Source: Thalia democratica (Eukaryota). From it: DNA of 64,000 bases. Where the stretch lies: assembly GCA_965202585.1 (NCBI GenBank), contig CBDBBG010000051.1:1-64000 (forward strand). Reading direction: 5' to 3'. A program made the position numbers and the translations under genes. Positions 1 to 60,294 of this stretch are shown here, in pieces (within the stretch, counting starts at the first letter, position 1; each line of letters begins with the position of its first letter). Below the pieces are notes generated by a model. That model was not told the origin of the DNA. It searched no databases and saw only the letters and a list, made by a program, of their open reading frames with translations.

Positions 1-1580
1 AAACCCGGATCCGGCAGAATACTAATTTTATGGATTCAGTAGATAATTAACAAATAATTTTTGTAATCAAATAATTTATTCAAAACTACTGACTTTAGAA
101 CATTTTAGCAAAATAAATACTATTTAAATTAGCTTCAGAAAGTAAATAAAATATTTTGTTTAAATGATAAATTGTGTTTTAACAAACTCATAATAACACA
201 TTAGAATTTATTTATTGTTAAGTATGTTATCAAAAAACTATCCAAAATATTGCGAAGAAATTTATGATTAGTAATAAAAGTAACTGAAGCTTCTAAAGGT
301 AATACAAGTTTGGAATACTTTGCAAAAACTTATATTACAATAGCATTATAAAAACATCAGTTACTACACATAGTATGCTTAAAAACTTTTTTAATATTTA
401 ACACATTAGAAAACTTTGAAAAATTTGATTTGATTTGAAAAACTTAACTTCAATCCAAGAATTGAATATCTTTTAGAAAGAAACTTGAAAAATTTAAGTT
501 ATAAGTTTATTAATTGTATATTCCAAAAACACTTATTCTGGTATTTAGAAAACATTTAAATCGAAAAAAGGTTAAACTAAAAACTGTTGTTGTAGTGCAA
601 TTTTACAAAGTTTAAATATCTTAACTCAATAATGAAATAAAAAAGGTTACATCATATTAAAGTAGAAACATTGAAATACGAAAATTAAACAAAAGTTTTT
701 AAACTTAATTTAATAACAGTTTTCTAAATAAACTGCATGATAAATTATGAACTCTCTAACTATAAAACTTCAGAAAATTATCATACCTTGAAACAATAAG
801 TACCTAAACTCTCCAATAAAAGGTTGACACGACTTGAAGAAAAACAAGTTACCATTGTTTTAGAGAAGTTAGTAAAAATACTGCTAATTAACCTTGAGTA
901 CCTAAAAATATCATTAAGATAATAAAGCTACTTAATATTTGAAAGGCAAAGATGCTTATTAAGAAACAAAACATTTCTAAAACATAAAAACAAGACTTAT
1001 TTTAAAGGTCAAGAAACATTTTAAGCAAATTAAACTTAGTTTTTTTTTGTTAATTAAAACAAGCCTGAATTTTTTATTTACTCAGAAAAGTTATGTGTGG
1101 CAACCATGCTACGAGTTCTAAACGAATTTAAATAGATGATTAATTTTTATTTAATTGAAATTGAATAACTGTTGTGTCATAAATTTGGAACCAGTAGAAA
1201 ACTTATGTACTCAATAGAGCTTTGTATATCACTCAAAATTATAGAAAGACGGTGCAAAAAAAGTTCTCTTAGTTTTTAATATTAACTTAAGTTTAAAACT
1301 TGGAAAAATGTCATGATCAAAAAAATTATCACTTACTTCAACATGTATAAAAATATTTCTGTCAAGCTTGTTTTCAGATAAAATACTTACAAAATTTCTT
1401 CTATTAGCAAAAAAGCTTAAATTTTTTCTGAGAAATATACTATCATACTTGCAAAGCATTTTTTGTTTTAAACTTCTCAATCAATACGCAGGTAAAACAT
1501 TAATTAAAACATACTGAATAAAATAGTAATATGATCGTGCTAAAATGCTTGCGTTCAACATTACAACAAATCAAACATTT

Positions 1581-4500
1581 TCACGATTTAAACAAGCAGC
1601 TGAACAGTTTGGGCACCAGAACGGGCATCAACCCGGCAACCACAGCCACGATCATGTTCTTGTGCTCCCACAAAAACCCCCTGTTGCGAGAACGCCACTT
1701 TTCATGCACTTCCGCCATCCGCTCGCGACTCCTCCTGCTGATGTTCAGGCACGGCTCCACCTCCTCCAAACCGCACTCTCCGAGCAGGGAAATCCCCGAC
1801 AGCCCCATGTAGCTGTGGAGGGGGTCGGCGTGGACCTGCGGCCACTTGCCCATCCCCCCGGTCAGCGGGTCCTGGGTGGAGAGGACAAAGTGGACGGCTT
1901 CTTCCTTGGACACCGCGTCGAGGTGGCCGACAATCTTCAGGGTGGATCCGATCCAGAAGGTGTAGCAGGTGTCGTCGTCCTTGTGCGGTCGGCCGTGGAA
2001 CCCGCACCGCTGCCGCCACAGCAGCCAGTTGGTCAGCTTGTCCATCTTGCTTCCGCCCAGCACCTCGTCCAGCTTGCCCATCATCTTCAGCGAAGCCACC
2101 GCGCAGAACGTCGACCCGCCGTGGCTCTCGTTGCATCGTCCCTGGCCGAAACCTGTCGTTTGAAAGTTGATGGGTTTTTCACATCTCGCTTGGTTTTAAT
2201 ACTTTTTCAAAGGTTGTATAGTTAACATGGTATGAGAAAACGCTAGTGATTTTAAATAAAACAGCTGAAAGAATTTTTGAAGATTAAAATATATTTTCAA
2301 ATTTTTATTGTTACATTATTATACGTTTTACTTTGTTCATATGTTATTCTACAACACTAACCTCCGTCGTAGGAGAAACTGCTCGCGATGAACTCACACG
2401 CTTTTGTGACGTCGACGCACGAGAAGTCGTTGAGTATGGTGCACACGCACATGGCGCAGTACATGAACCTCATGTCCCTCTCGCCATTTTCCACGCACAT
2501 CTCCTTGAAACCACCGTCTTCCAGCTGGAGGGCTCTGATGCCTTCCAAGCAGCCTTTTCTGTTGATGAGTCAGTTGCTTGTTGCGTTAAGAAAAGAAATT
2601 GCTGTTTAGCACGTTTTGGTTTATTTTTTCTCAAAATAAGCGCTTGTGTTTATGTCAGTTTTGTTATACTTTCATTGCCTTGTATAAACACCACTATTGG
2701 TATCTTAAAAGTGCATACATCCATGTAGTTTATATTATTGAAGTTTGTGATTTAGTTAAAATTTAAGTGAAAATTAAAATGAGTCAATAGATAGAGATCT
2801 TTTTAAATATACACTTTATTGCCAATGATGTCATTAAAACAGAGAAATTCAAGTCTTGATGCTAACAAGTTTTACATCAGTGACTTTATACTTAAAGTAA
2901 AATACATTATTGACACTTAAAAAAAATACTGAGAAAGTCATGTAACTTGTTATAAATTATAAAAAGTTACTCAGTATAGTACACATTATTACACTCTTAG
3001 TTTTTTAATCAACACAACTTCTGAAGTAGTAAAACTTACTTAAGAAACTTTTTAACAGAAGTATCTAATACAGTTAAAACAAAACTTTTTATACTTAATA
3101 TACGTATAACTAATATATTAACATTGAATTACTAGTCTACATTAACGCTAACAAGTAATAGAAACAGAATCAAAACATGAAAACATTACTTTGCTGAAAA
3201 GAAAACTGCTGACTATCTTTGAATCAGTTTTGCTAAAAATAAAGAATGCTAGTATATGACAAAGGTAGCTAAAGGCTTTATGTTAAAGTTTATCTTAATA
3301 TAAATTAATATATAATGATATCAAAGATTAAATATACACCATAGCTTTACTGAGTGGAAACTTTATTTTTAATTTATTATATTTATTATAAACGAACATG
3401 TTCTATATCCTGTATATGATTATTGACTGTTAGAAAATAACACTGAAATAACTTTGAAAAATTAAAACAAATTAGTATGATTTAATTAATAGCTATAAAA
3501 GTTGACTTTTAGTACAGGCATCTTACATTTTTTTTAAACATGAATTTGCAATGTCTATAACTGAAAATCTGTTTATAAAGCTATAAAAATTCAATGTTAT
3601 ATAAAAATTATAATGTTATTGTAGTAGTTTAATTAAAATAAATTAAACAAATGTTTGATTGCTTATTATGTAACCTTTGAAAAAAAGTTTTAAATATATT
3701 TTCATAATCTTTTTTTGATTGAAAACTTTTGAAGTTTTATGTTTATTAAGCAAAATGTTATGAACACAAACAAATTTTAAATCTAATTTAAACCTACTTT
3801 ATAAATCACTGTAAAAATATTTTTAAATGCAGAAACTAGCGCATGTAGCAAAAAAAAAATAAATTGGTGATAATTTTAGTTCAAGAATTTTTCTTTTTAA
3901 CTTGAAGAATTTTTTGATCAACTCTGAGAGTGTTTGATAATTTAAATTTTAAATAACATTTAAAATGATAACAAACCTTTTTTTAAATCAAAGTCTATCG
4001 CTGTTAGACTAAAAGTTTTCTCAAAAATAGTTAATAAGCTAGTATAAAATTTAAAAAATTTTAAAGATGCAAAACTTTACTAAATTTGTCTCCATAATAT
4101 TTATCAAATTTATAAGAAAAGGTAATCAGACATTGTCAAACACAACTAATCAACTCTTATCAAATTATATAAAAAAAAAACAGTTCAATTAATCAACTAA
4201 ACAAATCTTATAGTACTTAAGATTTAGAAAGGACAAAAAAAAAGTACAAACCTGTCAACTCTTGACAAGTCATCCCCCAATATCAGCAATATCGACAGGG
4301 CGCAGTAAGTCATGGCAACGTGGGACGTGTTGTTTCCATTATCACACGCCCCATTAGAATCCCCTCCCATGAAACCGCACCTGTGCAAGTTGTCCCCGCT
4401 CTCATTGGATACTATCTGCAGCGAGTATATCCAATCGACAAGCTCTTCCTGATCTTTCAACACGTGGAGGGAATCCAACACGTCCAATGCCGACACGCAG

Positions 4501-4610
4501 AAGAAAATGATGGTGAGGCGTTGCGAGTCGAGCACACACATCTGGCTGGGCAGGGTGTTGAGGACCCGCGTGAAGTACTTGACGTGCTTCTCCTTGTAGA
4601 AATCACTCAT
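1581..4610 (-). CDS. PGGT1B: Geranylgeranyltransferase type I beta subunit, 3 exons: 4610-4252, 2558-2362, 2152-1581 (1128 nt, 375 aa + TGA)
   Basis: GT-AG introns (AG|GTTTGT...catcaacAG|A, phase 2; GAG|GTTAGT...aacgacAG|G, phase 1) join three track ORFs in frame: ...LSRVDRKGCLEGIRALQLEDGGF...SYDGGFGQGRCNESHGGSTFC... Family motifs present: RLTIIFF, HVAMTY, DMRFMYCA, ESHGGSTFC, GFHGRPHK, DTCYTFW (Zn ligands D, C), GKWP (the Lys that replaces Mg2+ in GGTase-I), DPLHSY (Zn ligand H). Confidence 0.96.
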
Positions 4611-24303: not shown

Positions 24304-24952
24304 TACTTTTATTTGTTAGATATTGAAAAATGTGCAAAATTTTTACACCGAGCGTGTTTTCTCGCTTTCACACTTTTACAATAGCTTTAAGTTATTTTAA
24401 ACGTCCGATTCTTTACATTGAGATTCTGTCTTTTTATTTATACATAAGTATTTATTATCTTTTTTGTTTTTCAAAAAGTTCGTTTTAAGTTACTAGTTAA
24501 CCTTCAATACAAACTCATTAATAAGTAACTAACATCAAAGCGGATATACAAAAATAGTAGAGTGGCAAAAAATCCTGGAATTTTGTAGAAAAATTGCAAA
24601 AATCCTTAAATTTTTTTAATTATAGTTTTTTAACAACTTTGATAAAATAAAAAATTAAAATTGTATCTTTCTTAGACTTAAAAAAAAGTACAGAAGTTAT
24701 AATTAGTAATCGATATATTATTATTTAAAATATCATTTTAATTAATGAAACTACTTAATTACTTGCATTTTTGTTGCTTTGAATGTCAAGTCAGTCAATA
24801 AGAGCCTATTTCGGACTGGTCTAACTGAATACAATTTAGATTAAGAGAAAATTAAGTGCAAGAGCAAAATAAGAGAAGAGCCAAATAAAAATGTCTAATG
24901 TAATGTTTTATGCCCAATGTTACTTATATTAAATGTTGCAAATTTTGACATA

Positions 24953-29422: not shown

Positions 29423-32400
29423 TCACGATTTAAACAAGCAGCTGAACAGTTTGGGCACCAGAACGGGCATCAACCCGGCAACCACAGCCACGATCATGTT
29501 CTTGTGCTCCCACAAAAACCCCCTGTTGCGAGAACGCCACTTTTCATGCACTTCCGCCATCCGCTCGCGACTCCTCCTGCTGATGTTCAGGCACGGCTCC
29601 ACCTCCTCCAAACCGCACTCTCCGAGCAGGGAAATCCCCGACAGCCCCATGTAGCTGTGGAGGGGGTCGGCGTGGACCTGCGGCCACTTGCCCATCCCCC
29701 CGGTCAGCGGGTCCTGGGTGGAGAGGACAAAGTGGACGGCTTCTTCCTTGGACACCGCGTCGAGGTGGCCGACAATCTTCAGGGTGGATCCGATCCAGAA
29801 GGTGTAGCAGGTGTCGTCGTCCTTGTGCGGTCGGCCGTGGAACCCGCACCGCTGCCGCCACAGCAGCCAGTTGGTCAGCTTGTCCATCTTGCTTCCGCCC
29901 AGCACCTCGTCCAGCTTGCCCATCATCTTCAGCGAAGCCACCGCGCAGAACGTCGACCCGCCGTGGCTCTCGTTGCATCGTCCCTGGCCGAAACCTGTCG
30001 TTTGAAAGTTGATGGGTTTTTCACATCTCGCTTGGTTTTAATACTTTTTCAAAGGTTGTATAGTTAACATGGTATGAGAAAACGCTAGTGATTTTAAATA
30101 AAACAGCTGAAAGAATTTTTGAAGATTAAAATATATTTTCAAATTTTTATTGTTACATTATTATACGTTTTACTTTGTTCATATGTTATTCTACAACACT
30201 AACCTCCGTCGTAGGAGAAACTGCTCGCGATGAACTCACACGCTTTTGTGACGTCGACGCACGAGAAGTCGTTGAGTATGGTGCACACGCACATGGCGCA
30301 GTACATGAACCTCATGTCCCTCTCGCCATTTTCCACGCACATCTCCTTGAAACCACCGTCTTCCAGCTGGAGGGCTCTGATGCCTTCCAAGCAGCCTTTT
30401 CTGTTGATGAGTCAGTTGCTTGTTGCGTTAAGAAAAGAAATTGCTGTTTAGCACGTTTTGGTTTATTTTTTCTCAAAATAAGCGCTTGTGTTTATGTCAG
30501 TTTTGTTATACTTTCATTGCCTTGTATAAACACCACTATTGGTATCTTAAAAGTGCATACATCCATGTAGTTTATATTATTGAAGTTTGTGATTTAGTTA
30601 AAATTTAAGTGAAAATTAAAATGAGTCAATAGATAGAGATCTTTTTAAATATACACTTTATTGCCAATGATGTCATTAAAACAGAGAAATTCAAGTCTTG
30701 ATGCTAACAAGTTTTACATCAGTGACTTTATACTTAAAGTAAAATACATTATTGACACTTAAAAAAAATACTGAGAAAGTCATGTAACTTGTTATAAATT
30801 ATAAAAAGTTACTCAGTATAGTACACATTATTACACTCTTAGTTTTTTAATCAACACAACTTCTGAAGTAGTAAAACTTACTTAAGAAACTTTTTAACAG
30901 AAGTATCTAATACAGTTAAAACAAAACTTTTTATACTTAATATACGTATAACTAATATATTAACATTGAATTACTAGTCTACATTAACGCTAACAAGTAA
31001 TAGAAACAGAATCAAAACATGAAAACATTACTTTGCTGAAAAGAAAACTGCTGACTATCTTTGAATCAGTTTTGCTAAAAATAAAGAATGCTAGTATATG
31101 ACAAAGGTAGCTAAAGGCTTTATGTTAAAGTTTATCTTAATATAAATTAATATATAATGATATCAAAGATTAAATATACACCATAGCTTTACTGAGTGGA
31201 AACTTTATTTTTAATTTATTATATTTATTATAAACGAACATGTTCTATATCCTGTATATGATTATTGACTGTTAGAAAATAACACTGAAATAACTTTGAA
31301 AAATTAAAACAAATTAGTATGATTTAATTAATAGCTATAAAAGTTGACTTTTAGTACAGGCATCTTACATTTTTTTTAAACATGAATTTGCAATGTCTAT
31401 AACTGAAAATCTGTTTATAAAGCTATAAAAATTCAATGTTATATAAAAATTATAATGTTATTGTAGTAGTTTAATTAAAATAAATTAAACAAATGTTTGA
31501 TTGCTTATTATGTAACCTTTGAAAAAAAGTTTTAAATATATTTTCATAATCTTTTTTTGATTGAAAACTTTTGAAGTTTTATGTTTATTAAGCAAAATGT
31601 TATGAACACAAACAAATTTTAAATCTAATTTAAACCTACTTTATAAATCACTGTAAAAATATTTTTAAATGCAGAAACTAGCGCATGTAGCAAAAAAAAA
31701 ATAAATTGGTGATAATTTTAGTTCAAGAATTTTTCTTTTTAACTTGAAGAATTTTTTGATCAACTCTGAGAGTGTTTGATAATTTAAATTTTAAATAACA
31801 TTTAAAATGATAACAAACCTTTTTTTAAATCAAAGTCTATCGCTGTTAGACTAAAAGTTTTCTCAAAAATAGTTAATAAGCTAGTATAAAATTTAAAAAA
31901 TTTTAAAGATGCAAAACTTTACTAAATTTGTCTCCATAATATTTATCAAATTTATAAGAAAAGGTAATCAGACATTGTCAAACACAACTAATCAACTCTT
32001 ATCAAATTATATAAAAAAAAAACAGTTCAATTAATCAACTAAACAAATCTTATAGTACTTAAGATTTAGAAAGGACAAAAAAAAAGTACAAACCTGTCAA
32101 CTCTTGACAAGTCATCCCCCAATATCAGCAATATCGACAGGGCGCAGTAAGTCATGGCAACGTGGGACGTGTTGTTTCCATTATCACACGCCCCATTAGA
32201 ATCCCCTCCCATGAAACCGCACCTGTGCAAGTTGTCCCCGCTCTCATTGGATACTATCTGCAGCGAGTATATCCAATCGACAAGCTCTTCCTGATCTTTC
32301 AACACGTGGAGGGAATCCAACACGTCCAATGCCGACACGCAGAAGAAAATGATGGTGAGGCGTTGCGAGTCGAGCACACACATCTGGCTGGGCAGGGTGT

Positions 32401-32452
32401 TGAGGACCCGCGTGAAGTACTTGACGTGCTTCTCCTTGTAGAAATCACTCAT
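29423..32452 (-). CDS. PGGT1B: PGGT1B copy B, exons 32452-32094, 30400-30204, 29994-29423
   Basis: Same translations as copy A at +27,842. Confidence 0.96.
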
Positions 32453-57264: not shown

Positions 57265-60200
57265 TCACGATTTAAACAAGCAGCTGAACAGTTTGGGCAC
57301 CAGAACGGGCATCAACCCGGCAACCACAGCCACGATCATGTTCTTGTGCTCCCACAAAAACCCCCTGTTGCGAGAACGCCACTTTTCATGCACTTCCGCC
57401 ATCCGCTCGCGACTCCTCCTGCTGATGTTCAGGCACGGCTCCACCTCCTCCAAACCGCACTCTCCGAGCAGGGAAATCCCCGACAGCCCCATGTAGCTGT
57501 GGAGGGGGTCGGCGTGGACCTGCGGCCACTTGCCCATCCCCCCGGTCAGCGGGTCCTGGGTGGAGAGGACAAAGTGGACGGCTTCTTCCTTGGACACCGC
57601 GTCGAGGTGGCCGACAATCTTCAGGGTGGATCCGATCCAGAAGGTGTAGCAGGTGTCGTCGTCCTTGTGCGGTCGGCCGTGGAACCCGCACCGCTGCCGC
57701 CACAGCAGCCAGTTGGTCAGCTTGTCCATCTTGCTTCCGCCCAGCACCTCGTCCAGCTTGCCCATCATCTTCAGCGAAGCCACCGCGCAGAACGTCGACC
57801 CGCCGTGGCTCTCGTTGCATCGTCCCTGGCCGAAACCTGTCGTTTGAAAGTTGATGGGTTTTTCACATCTCGCTTGGTTTTAATACTTTTTCAAAGGTTG
57901 TATAGTTAACATGGTATGAGAAAACGCTAGTGATTTTAAATAAAACAGCTGAAAGAATTTTTGAAGATTAAAATATATTTTCAAATTTTTATTGTTACAT
58001 TATTATACGTTTTACTTTGTTCATATGTTATTCTACAACACTAACCTCCGTCGTAGGAGAAACTGCTCGCGATGAACTCACACGCTTTTGTGACGTCGAC
58101 GCACGAGAAGTCGTTGAGTATGGTGCACACGCACATGGCGCAGTACATGAACCTCATGTCCCTCTCGCCATTTTCCACGCACATCTCCTTGAAACCACCG
58201 TCTTCCAGCTGGAGGGCTCTGATGCCTTCCAAGCAGCCTTTTCTGTTGATGAGTCAGTTGCTTGTTGCGTTAAGAAAAGAAATTGCTGTTTAGCACGTTT
58301 TGGTTTATTTTTTCTCAAAATAAGCGCTTGTGTTTATGTCAGTTTTGTTATACTTTCATTGCCTTGTATAAACACCACTATTGGTATCTTAAAAGTGCAT
58401 ACATCCATGTAGTTTATATTATTGAAGTTTGTGATTTAGTTAAAATTTAAGTGAAAATTAAAATGAGTCAATAGATAGAGATCTTTTTAAATATACACTT
58501 TATTGCCAATGATGTCATTAAAACAGAGAAATTCAAGTCTTGATGCTAACAAGTTTTACATCAGTGACTTTATACTTAAAGTAAAATACATTATTGACAC
58601 TTAAAAAAAATACTGAGAAAGTCATGTAACTTGTTATAAATTATAAAAAGTTACTCAGTATAGTACACATTATTACACTCTTAGTTTTTTAATCAACACA
58701 ACTTCTGAAGTAGTAAAACTTACTTAAGAAACTTTTTAACAGAAGTATCTAATACAGTTAAAACAAAACTTTTTATACTTAATATACGTATAACTAATAT
58801 ATTAACATTGAATTACTAGTCTACATTAACGCTAACAAGTAATAGAAACAGAATCAAAACATGAAAACATTACTTTGCTGAAAAGAAAACTGCTGACTAT
58901 CTTTGAATCAGTTTTGCTAAAAATAAAGAATGCTAGTATATGACAAAGGTAGCTAAAGGCTTTATGTTAAAGTTTATCTTAATATAAATTAATATATAAT
59001 GATATCAAAGATTAAATATACACCATAGCTTTACTGAGTGGAAACTTTATTTTTAATTTATTATATTTATTATAAACGAACATGTTCTATATCCTGTATA
59101 TGATTATTGACTGTTAGAAAATAACACTGAAATAACTTTGAAAAATTAAAACAAATTAGTATGATTTAATTAATAGCTATAAAAGTTGACTTTTAGTACA
59201 GGCATCTTACATTTTTTTTAAACATGAATTTGCAATGTCTATAACTGAAAATCTGTTTATAAAGCTATAAAAATTCAATGTTATATAAAAATTATAATGT
59301 TATTGTAGTAGTTTAATTAAAATAAATTAAACAAATGTTTGATTGCTTATTATGTAACCTTTGAAAAAAAGTTTTAAATATATTTTCATAATCTTTTTTT
59401 GATTGAAAACTTTTGAAGTTTTATGTTTATTAAGCAAAATGTTATGAACACAAACAAATTTTAAATCTAATTTAAACCTACTTTATAAATCACTGTAAAA
59501 ATATTTTTAAATGCAGAAACTAGCGCATGTAGCAAAAAAAAAATAAATTGGTGATAATTTTAGTTCAAGAATTTTTCTTTTTAACTTGAAGAATTTTTTG
59601 ATCAACTCTGAGAGTGTTTGATAATTTAAATTTTAAATAACATTTAAAATGATAACAAACCTTTTTTTAAATCAAAGTCTATCGCTGTTAGACTAAAAGT
59701 TTTCTCAAAAATAGTTAATAAGCTAGTATAAAATTTAAAAAATTTTAAAGATGCAAAACTTTACTAAATTTGTCTCCATAATATTTATCAAATTTATAAG
59801 AAAAGGTAATCAGACATTGTCAAACACAACTAATCAACTCTTATCAAATTATATAAAAAAAAAACAGTTCAATTAATCAACTAAACAAATCTTATAGTAC
59901 TTAAGATTTAGAAAGGACAAAAAAAAAGTACAAACCTGTCAACTCTTGACAAGTCATCCCCCAATATCAGCAATATCGACAGGGCGCAGTAAGTCATGGC
60001 AACGTGGGACGTGTTGTTTCCATTATCACACGCCCCATTAGAATCCCCTCCCATGAAACCGCACCTGTGCAAGTTGTCCCCGCTCTCATTGGATACTATC
60101 TGCAGCGAGTATATCCAATCGACAAGCTCTTCCTGATCTTTCAACACGTGGAGGGAATCCAACACGTCCAATGCCGACACGCAGAAGAAAATGATGGTGA

Positions 60201-60294
60201 GGCGTTGCGAGTCGAGCACACACATCTGGCTGGGCAGGGTGTTGAGGACCCGCGTGAAGTACTTGACGTGCTTCTCCTTGTAGAAATCACTCAT
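57265..60294 (-). CDS. PGGT1B: PGGT1B copy C, exons 60294-59936, 58242-58046, 57836-57265
   Basis: Same translations as copy A at +55,684. Confidence 0.96.

Follow-up and report, generated by a model that had tools for sequence, protein, structure and literature searches.

A hydrophobic C-terminal tail, probably a tail anchor, on the geranylgeranyltransferase type I beta subunit of tunicates

Protein prenyltransferases are described as heterodimeric cytosolic enzymes (review PMC9141697), and the question raised by the locus studied here is whether the beta subunit of one of them, geranylgeranyltransferase type I (GGTase-I), is held on a membrane by its own C-terminus in the salp Thalia democratica. 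The gene lies on the minus strand, from 4610 to 1581, of a stretch of 64,000 nucleotides (contig CBDBBG010000051.1, positions 1 to 64,000), which is called the window below. Its predicted product is a GGTase-I beta with a probable C-terminal tail anchor that would have arisen a single time in tunicates and would leave the catalytic domain on the cytosolic side. The insertion of the tail into a membrane and its orientation are predicted from hydropathy, conservation and structure modelling, as set out in the following.

The last motif common to animal GGTase-I beta proteins (H..W) reads HEKW in the window protein (1695..1706, minus strand, as are all the tail features), as placed by an alignment to rat GGTase-I beta (PDB 1N4P chain B) and 42 orthologues. 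After HEKW the frame reads RSRNRGFLWEHKN, MIVAVVAGLMPVLVPKLFSCLF, KS and stop. The first part is a basic linker of 13 residues, RSRNRGFLWEHKN (1656..1694), with a net charge of +3, ending in an aromatic-basic-Asn juxtamembrane motif. It is followed by a hydrophobic block of 18 residues, MIVAVVAGLMPVLVPKLF (1602..1655), the core of the predicted tail-anchor helix, and by the last six residues, SCLFKS, with the TGA stop at 1583..1581 (together 1581..1601), which extend the hydrophobic run to 22 residues and have a K/R minus D/E balance of +1. Six residues thus lie between the 18-residue block and the C-terminus, and two after the 22-residue run; the grand average of hydropathy (GRAVY) is 2.20 for the block and 2.18 for the run. 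The tail gives the highest 21-residue Kyte-Doolittle window of the whole protein (2.19), the second-best windows (1.6-1.8, residues 31-51) corresponding to a toroid helix with Asp residues in it. Hydropathy showed neither a signal peptide at the N-terminus, which is polar (MSDFYKEKHVKYF...), nor a second transmembrane segment. A sequence-only reading of this DNA had described a 375-residue GGTase-I beta with a basic linker, a hydrophobic C-terminal run, KS and a stop, and the frame reads exactly so. It had also set this end against the polar ends of the known mammalian forms, which is borne out by the mammalian protein P0002, ending ...DSKECSENVHIST, and by the rat alignment, which stops at ...WRSRN and leaves only 12 of the 377 rat residues vs 33 in the window protein.

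We examined the gene model and the family identity of its product. The surroundings are very AT-rich (about 22-27% GC) and the exons sharply GC-rich. Three exons with GT/AG borders give 1128 nt, that is 375 aa. Exon 1 (4252..4610, minus strand, 359 nt) starts with an ATG at 4610, ends at a GT donor at 4251-4250 and covers toroid positions 1-100; exon 2 (2362..2558, minus strand, 197 nt), between an AG acceptor at 2560-2559 and a GT donor at 2361-2360, covers toroid positions 103-165; exon 3, the last (1581..2152, minus strand, 572 nt including the TGA), codes for the C-terminal half of the toroid, the zinc ligands and the tail. Against Pfam PF00432, whose curated cut-off is 26.5 bits, the three exons scored 91.6 bits (E 8e-26), 63.1 bits (E 4e-17) and 154.3 bits (E 6e-45), respectively, and jointly they span profile positions 1-304 of this prenyltransferase alpha-alpha toroid. 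Protein searches and folding were run on exon pieces and on two relatives, P0358 (97% identical) and P0173 (81% identical). The nearest solved structure to exon 3 is rat GGTase-I beta (1N4P_B, E 8e-51), the paralogue structures scoring lower (2e-29 for RabGGT beta and about 1e-6 for FTase beta). In the HMMER alignment the rat zinc ligands D269, C271 and H321 fall on the D, C and H of DDTCYTFW and DPLHSY, and these columns are invariant in a 40-sequence alignment (D246, C248 and H298 in P0173). Since rat GGTase-I beta is the best structure match and the zinc ligands are identical, the sequence identifies the gene product as a GGTase-I beta orthologue (PGGT1B/Cdc43). The tree also groups the window protein with named GGTase-I beta proteins, and separate RabGGT beta and FTase beta loci are present in the genome. 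A heterodimer with the shared alpha subunit and a CaaL-directed geranylgeranyl transfer would be expected from this orthology.

The tail was then considered as coding sequence. Its GC content is 52%, against 26% in the 120 nt after the stop, the drop falling exactly at the stop, and GC at third codon positions (GC3) is 73% in the tail vs 81% in the body, in agreement with the sequence-only reading, which had found the tail to share the codon style of the rest of the exon. Marine metatranscriptome contigs, about 93-95% identical to the window, join 2149 to 2359 and 2558 to 4252, which are both introns of the model; among those on exon 3 no joint removing the tail was seen. A cDNA-type contig from a close relative, L014 (1262 nt), is intronless and encodes P0358, a protein of 375 aa that differs at 11 residues. 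It is 94.3% identical to the spliced model, colinear over both exon junctions, ends at the same stop and runs 106 nt past it, this 3' untranslated region (UTR) being 80% identical to the window; on this basis a 3' UTR of at least about 105 nt, with 26% GC, is placed at 1475..1580 (minus strand). A second intronless contig, L010 (1202 nt, about 80% nucleotide identity), encodes the 382-residue P0173, tail included. Because both contigs are without an intron where the window gene and a genomic relative, L001, have one before exon 3, L014 and L010 derive from spliced RNA. The stop codon is common to the window, L001, L010 and L014. A splicing-out before the tail, which the earlier reading had proposed to check at the exon end, is ruled out by the lack of any such joint and by L014 and L010, both colinear through a tail that is contiguous with the catalytic exon.

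Selection on the tail was estimated as omega, the Nei-Gojobori ratio of nonsynonymous to synonymous divergence (dN/dS), the tail partition being the transmembrane domain (TMD) and the end of the protein, 24 codons. Against L014, omega was 0.09 for TMD and end and 0.07 for the body, the linker being without changes; against L001 the values were 0.16, 0.22 and 0.44 for TMD and end, body and linker, and against L010, with a body dS of 0.88, they were 0.25, 0.14 and 0.42. All replacements within the block exchange one hydrophobic residue for another (I>V, I>F and V>A). Tail conservation, another check proposed from the sequence, gave omega values of 0.09-0.25 in close relatives and, as described below, a homologous block in ascidians. 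Taken together, these comparisons establish, at the level of sequence, that the tail is real coding sequence, retained in the mature mRNA and under constraint. In sequencing run X4, from a very close relative (organism B), one tail change was listed, synonymous, at 1638, and runs X6 and X7 gave a few identical low-depth pieces of 151 nt. An organism B contig of run X4 passes from 1720 to 1922, with 201 nt of exon 3 missing and TTCT standing in their place, perhaps because the copy carries a deletion or the contig was misassembled.

Orthologues were collected by profile search with full-length sequences, and their tails were aligned with MAFFT. The ascidian orthologues have 398-408 aa and are about 45 residues longer than the proteins of other animals. 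Tails were found in Phallusia mammillata, Clavelina lepadiformis, Styela clava and a sequence cluster that includes Ciona intestinalis XP_078483675.1, and in nine further tunicate-type sequences, some of them from transcriptome or metagenome assemblies; that of Phallusia reads VVLAFVIGLGAVVVPWIY followed by KVYFRHAT. The 18-residue block runs without any indel through 15 sequences (the window and 14 other tunicate-type sequences). Within it Ala4 and Gly8 are invariant, Leu9 and Pro15 are each kept in 12 of the 15, position 18 is aromatic in 15/15, and position 16 is Trp in the ascidian-type sequences and Lys in the pelagic clade. The block has a GRAVY of 1.87-2.42 in the 15 sequences and is followed by 3-10 residues whose net charge lies between -1 and +3. 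In the preceding linker, length ranges from 13 to 33 aa and net charge from -4 to +4, with the terminal [FYH][KRG][TN] kept. Eisenberg mean hydrophobicity is 0.68-0.89 and the helical moment 0.10-0.32 across the tunicate blocks (0.72 and 0.16 in the window); with so low a moment, the tail helix would be uniformly hydrophobic and not amphipathic.

In a maximum-likelihood tree built after the tails had been cut off, the 13/13 tail-bearing sequences formed one clade with a support of 100/100, apart from amphioxus, vertebrates, ambulacrarians, protostomes, cnidarians and one sponge. A control scan covered 211 GGTase-I beta sequences with a complete C-terminus, 13 tunicate-type and 198 non-tunicate, using as criterion a 19-residue Kyte-Doolittle window of at least 1.6 within the last 45 residues. 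Such a hydrophobic end was found in 13/13 tunicate-type sequences vs 1/198 non-tunicate ones, which goes beyond chance; in vertebrates, amphioxus and protostomes the orthologue stops a short way past H..W. Since all tail-bearers fall in a single clade, one gain of the tail suffices, and from the sequences the best reading is a gain in the tunicate lineage followed by retention in ascidians and pelagic tunicates. On the same alignments, the tail is a feature of all tunicates sampled, not an oddity of salps. The tail-anchor proposal of the sequence-only reading is supported: hydropathy and AlphaFold2 agree with it, and its framing as a matter of one species proves too narrow. Among the paralogues of the same genome, RabGGT beta (L012, G000:C1:79760800-79765800) carries no hydrophobic tail and ends ...VKVQLLPS, and for FTase beta (L013, G000:C1:68863500-68869500) only the middle exons were located, the last exon not being found. 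The Phallusia tail (residues 345-408), used as a search query, gave no usable feature match, and its structural matches were short-helix noise.

The single non-tunicate sequence with a hydrophobic end, P0032 (735 aa), combines, like the window protein, a GGTase-I beta domain and a C-terminal hydrophobic segment in one polypeptide. Its TMD, unlike that of tunicates, lies about 350 residues past the toroid behind a GRAM-like region, is unrelated in sequence and belongs to a protein outside the tunicate clade; P0032 may be two merged gene models, and as a parallel case it was rejected, whether it is a fusion or a merged model.

Structure prediction was carried out with AlphaFold2. For P0173, with the 40-sequence alignment, the mean predicted local distance difference test (pLDDT) was 91.9, and the model shows one continuous helix, 325-377, through the linker and the hydrophobic block, with a block pLDDT of 84-92 up to residue 380 and of 50 for the last two residues. 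For exon 3 of the window (mean pLDDT 89.5), the last toroid helix, 139-156, is followed by a break at Arg-Gly and then by a 28-residue helix, 159-186, which covers FLWEHKN and the block (block pLDDT 74-90).

The protein has the layout of a tail-anchored protein: a C-terminal helix of TMD length, a short trailing segment and a basic, aromatic juxtamembrane stretch on the N-side. Given so short a segment after the block, the TMD would be expected from the sequence to leave the ribosome only at termination. We propose that an ordinary catalytic toroid with its zinc ligands kept is followed by the basic linker and a hydrophobic helix of 18-22 residues, which would enter the membrane post-translationally, in the manner of tail-anchored proteins. 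A flexible linker, differing in length between lineages, would then tether the alpha/beta enzyme at the cytosolic face, the site at which geranylgeranyl diphosphate (GGPP) partitions and which is the next destination of prenylated CaaX products. A cytosolic N-side is consistent with the +3 carried by the N-terminal flank of the helix. As to the target membrane, Costello et al. 2017 (PMC5450235) reported that targeting to the endoplasmic reticulum (ER) is favoured when the TMD is hydrophobic and the tail carries little charge, yeast ER tail-anchored proteins having a GRAVY above 1.75, that moderate hydrophobicity with some positive charge directs to mitochondria, and that high charge directs to peroxisomes. 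By analogy, the ER might be the likeliest membrane, since the helix has a GRAVY of about 2 and the tail a charge of about +1; this is a weak call. RCE1 and ICMT are ER enzymes, and an ER-anchored GGTase-I would adjoin both. It may even be that in all tunicates an anchor gained at their origin made the CaaX geranylgeranyltransferase an integral protein whose invariant Ala-x3-Gly face pairs within the membrane with a partner, for instance RCE1 or ICMT, giving a membrane-bound line of prenylation, proteolysis and methylation, but as a whole this extension is improbable.

Several observations weigh against the tail anchor. The metatranscriptome contig on exon 3 covers 1679-2093 and ends before the hydrophobic codons, and the RNA support for the tail comes from contigs of close relatives, not from this individual. 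The tunicate sampling consists of ascidians and pelagic forms, appendicularians not being included. The AlphaFold2 output came without contacts, and the helix may fold back onto the toroid. The salp-type block holds two prolines, one glycine and Lys16, and its un-positioned Hessa sum is +4.6 kcal/mol vs +0.9 to +3.6 for ascidian blocks, so that on the translocon scale the salp block appears marginal; the caveat made in the sequence-only reading, that two prolines and one lysine make the helix marginal, therefore stands. Finally, an invariant Ala-x3-Gly together with a conserved Pro is also what a specific contact between helices might show, and such a contact can lie outside a bilayer.

The strongest rival is that the conserved helix does not span a bilayer. 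It would then be either a protein-contact element, which might dock on the alpha subunit, on a partner or, as an autoinhibitor, in the lipid or peptide groove of the enzyme itself, or a helix for peripheral or monotopic binding to a membrane or a lipid droplet. We regard this rival as possible, though rather unlikely. The invariant Ala4 and Gly8 and the near-invariant Pro15 do resemble a specific packing face, full insertion is borderline given the Pro/Gly content and the positive Hessa sums, most of all for the salp form, and a confidence such as that of the P0173 block sometimes reflects a packed element. Small-x3-small motifs are, however, typical of transmembrane helices. The length of the block is fixed while the linker varies as given above, as would be expected of a tether to a structure beyond the enzyme rather than of a precise intramolecular dock. 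The helix also has no polar face, as its low moment indicates, and it sits where a tail anchor would, at the very end of the protein, with only 3-10 residues behind it and flanked on either side by an aromatic/basic belt.

Another kind of C-terminal signal was considered as well, either a lipidation motif, in which CLFKS would serve as an extended prenylation box of the form C(x)3X, or a degron regulating the amount of unpaired beta subunit. There is a Cys five residues from the end in the window protein, P0358 and P0173, and hydrophobic C-termini can act as quality-control signals. This explanation is nevertheless very unlikely, the conservation sitting in the upstream 18-residue block and not in the last residues. 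P0001 has Tyr in place of the Cys, and most ascidian sequences lack a Cys at the aligned position, some having one at another site of the tail; the prenylation-box reading of CLFKS was ruled out, the Cys not being conserved. A degron, for its part, would need neither the invariant Ala-x3-Gly nor a fixed length. The least credible explanation, that the tail is non-functional, whether as a neutral extension, as an artefact of the gene model or through reading into what was once 3' UTR, could appeal to the early stop of the vertebrate, amphioxus and protostome orthologues, to the odd tandem array formed by the contig and to a frameshifted chromosomal copy, but it is already largely refuted by the spliced cDNA contigs that carry the tail, by low omega at a dS of up to about 1, by the homologous block across ascidians and pelagic tunicates, and by GC and GC3 that stay at coding level up to the stop and then fall.

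Compared with known systems, the window protein is a member of the GGTase-I beta family with a new architecture, matched to tail-anchored enzymes by layout and not by sequence. It shares with mammalian PGGT1B (rat 1N4P chain B) the PF00432 toroid, the zinc ligands and orthology by tree, with about 55% identity to the rat protein over the last 155 aligned residues, up to H..W; where the mammalian proteins have a short polar tail, tunicates add a linker of 13-33 aa and a hydrophobic helix of 18-22 aa. The ascidian GGTase-I beta-like proteins belong to the same clade and carry the block in the same register, with Ala4, Gly8, Leu9, Pro15 and the aromatic residue 18; they differ from the window protein in a linker of 18-33 aa, Trp16 in place of Lys16, Gly-Leu-Gly in place of Gly-Leu-Met and a more hydrophobic block. 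With tail-anchored enzymes of the ER and other organelles (cytochrome b5, FALDH/ALDH3A2 and squalene synthase), the window protein shares the layout of a cytosolic catalytic domain without signal peptide, one hydrophobic helix no more than about 30 residues from the C-terminus, and a short trailing segment of low charge. Unlike them, the tunicate block is richer in Gly and Pro, its insertion is at present a prediction, and there is no sequence relationship. Squalene synthase is itself an enzyme that uses an isoprenoid diphosphate and is held at the ER by a tail anchor. The GRAVY of about 2 lies within the ER tail-anchor range of Costello et al. (PMC5450235).

Our literature search, of incomplete coverage and hence no proof of absence, returned no report of a transmembrane or tail-anchored GGTase-I or of the ascidian tail, and the consistent structural change is not apparent from the database entries, whose names read only "GGTase-I beta-like". 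The hand-over of prenylated proteins to RCE1 and ICMT at the ER is usually pictured as diffusion. If the tail-anchor reading is true, a chordate subphylum with a self-anchored GGTase-I would be a natural experiment on the site of prenylation of Rho, Rac and Rap-type GTPases, and the tail would be a molecular character uniting tunicates. Tagged constructs are routinely electroporated in Ciona, which makes the anchor directly testable.

Among the GGTase-I beta sequences we found also P0277 (703 aa), in which two complete GGTase-I beta domains stand in one open reading frame, as a merged model or a real fusion.

The window contig (C60) is a tandem array with a unit of 27,842 bp, extending to at least C60:115978. 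At least five intact GGTase-I beta copies, identical in exons 1 and 3, are present in the array, three of them within the window. The second whole-gene copy (29423..32452, minus strand) lies one unit further on, with a 100% match in exons 3 and 1, and the third (57265..60294, minus strand) is likewise identical in exons 1 and 3. Differences between the units are confined to the first ~500 nt of the contig and to 11 mismatches near 24,500; between about 1000 and 24,500 there is none. Either the unit was amplified very recently, or the array is spurious, produced in assembling an unplaced contig. A chromosomal copy at G000:C6:70294283-70299004 (L007, L009 and L011) is about 97% identical over window positions 1-2562 and has a different and longer intron 1 (about 3.4 kb vs 1.69 kb). 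One extra G in a GGG run (window ~2058) shifts the frame of its exon 3, by which it is either a young pseudogene or the product of a homopolymer error. The tail of this copy is otherwise intact and carries an I>V change, as in P0358.

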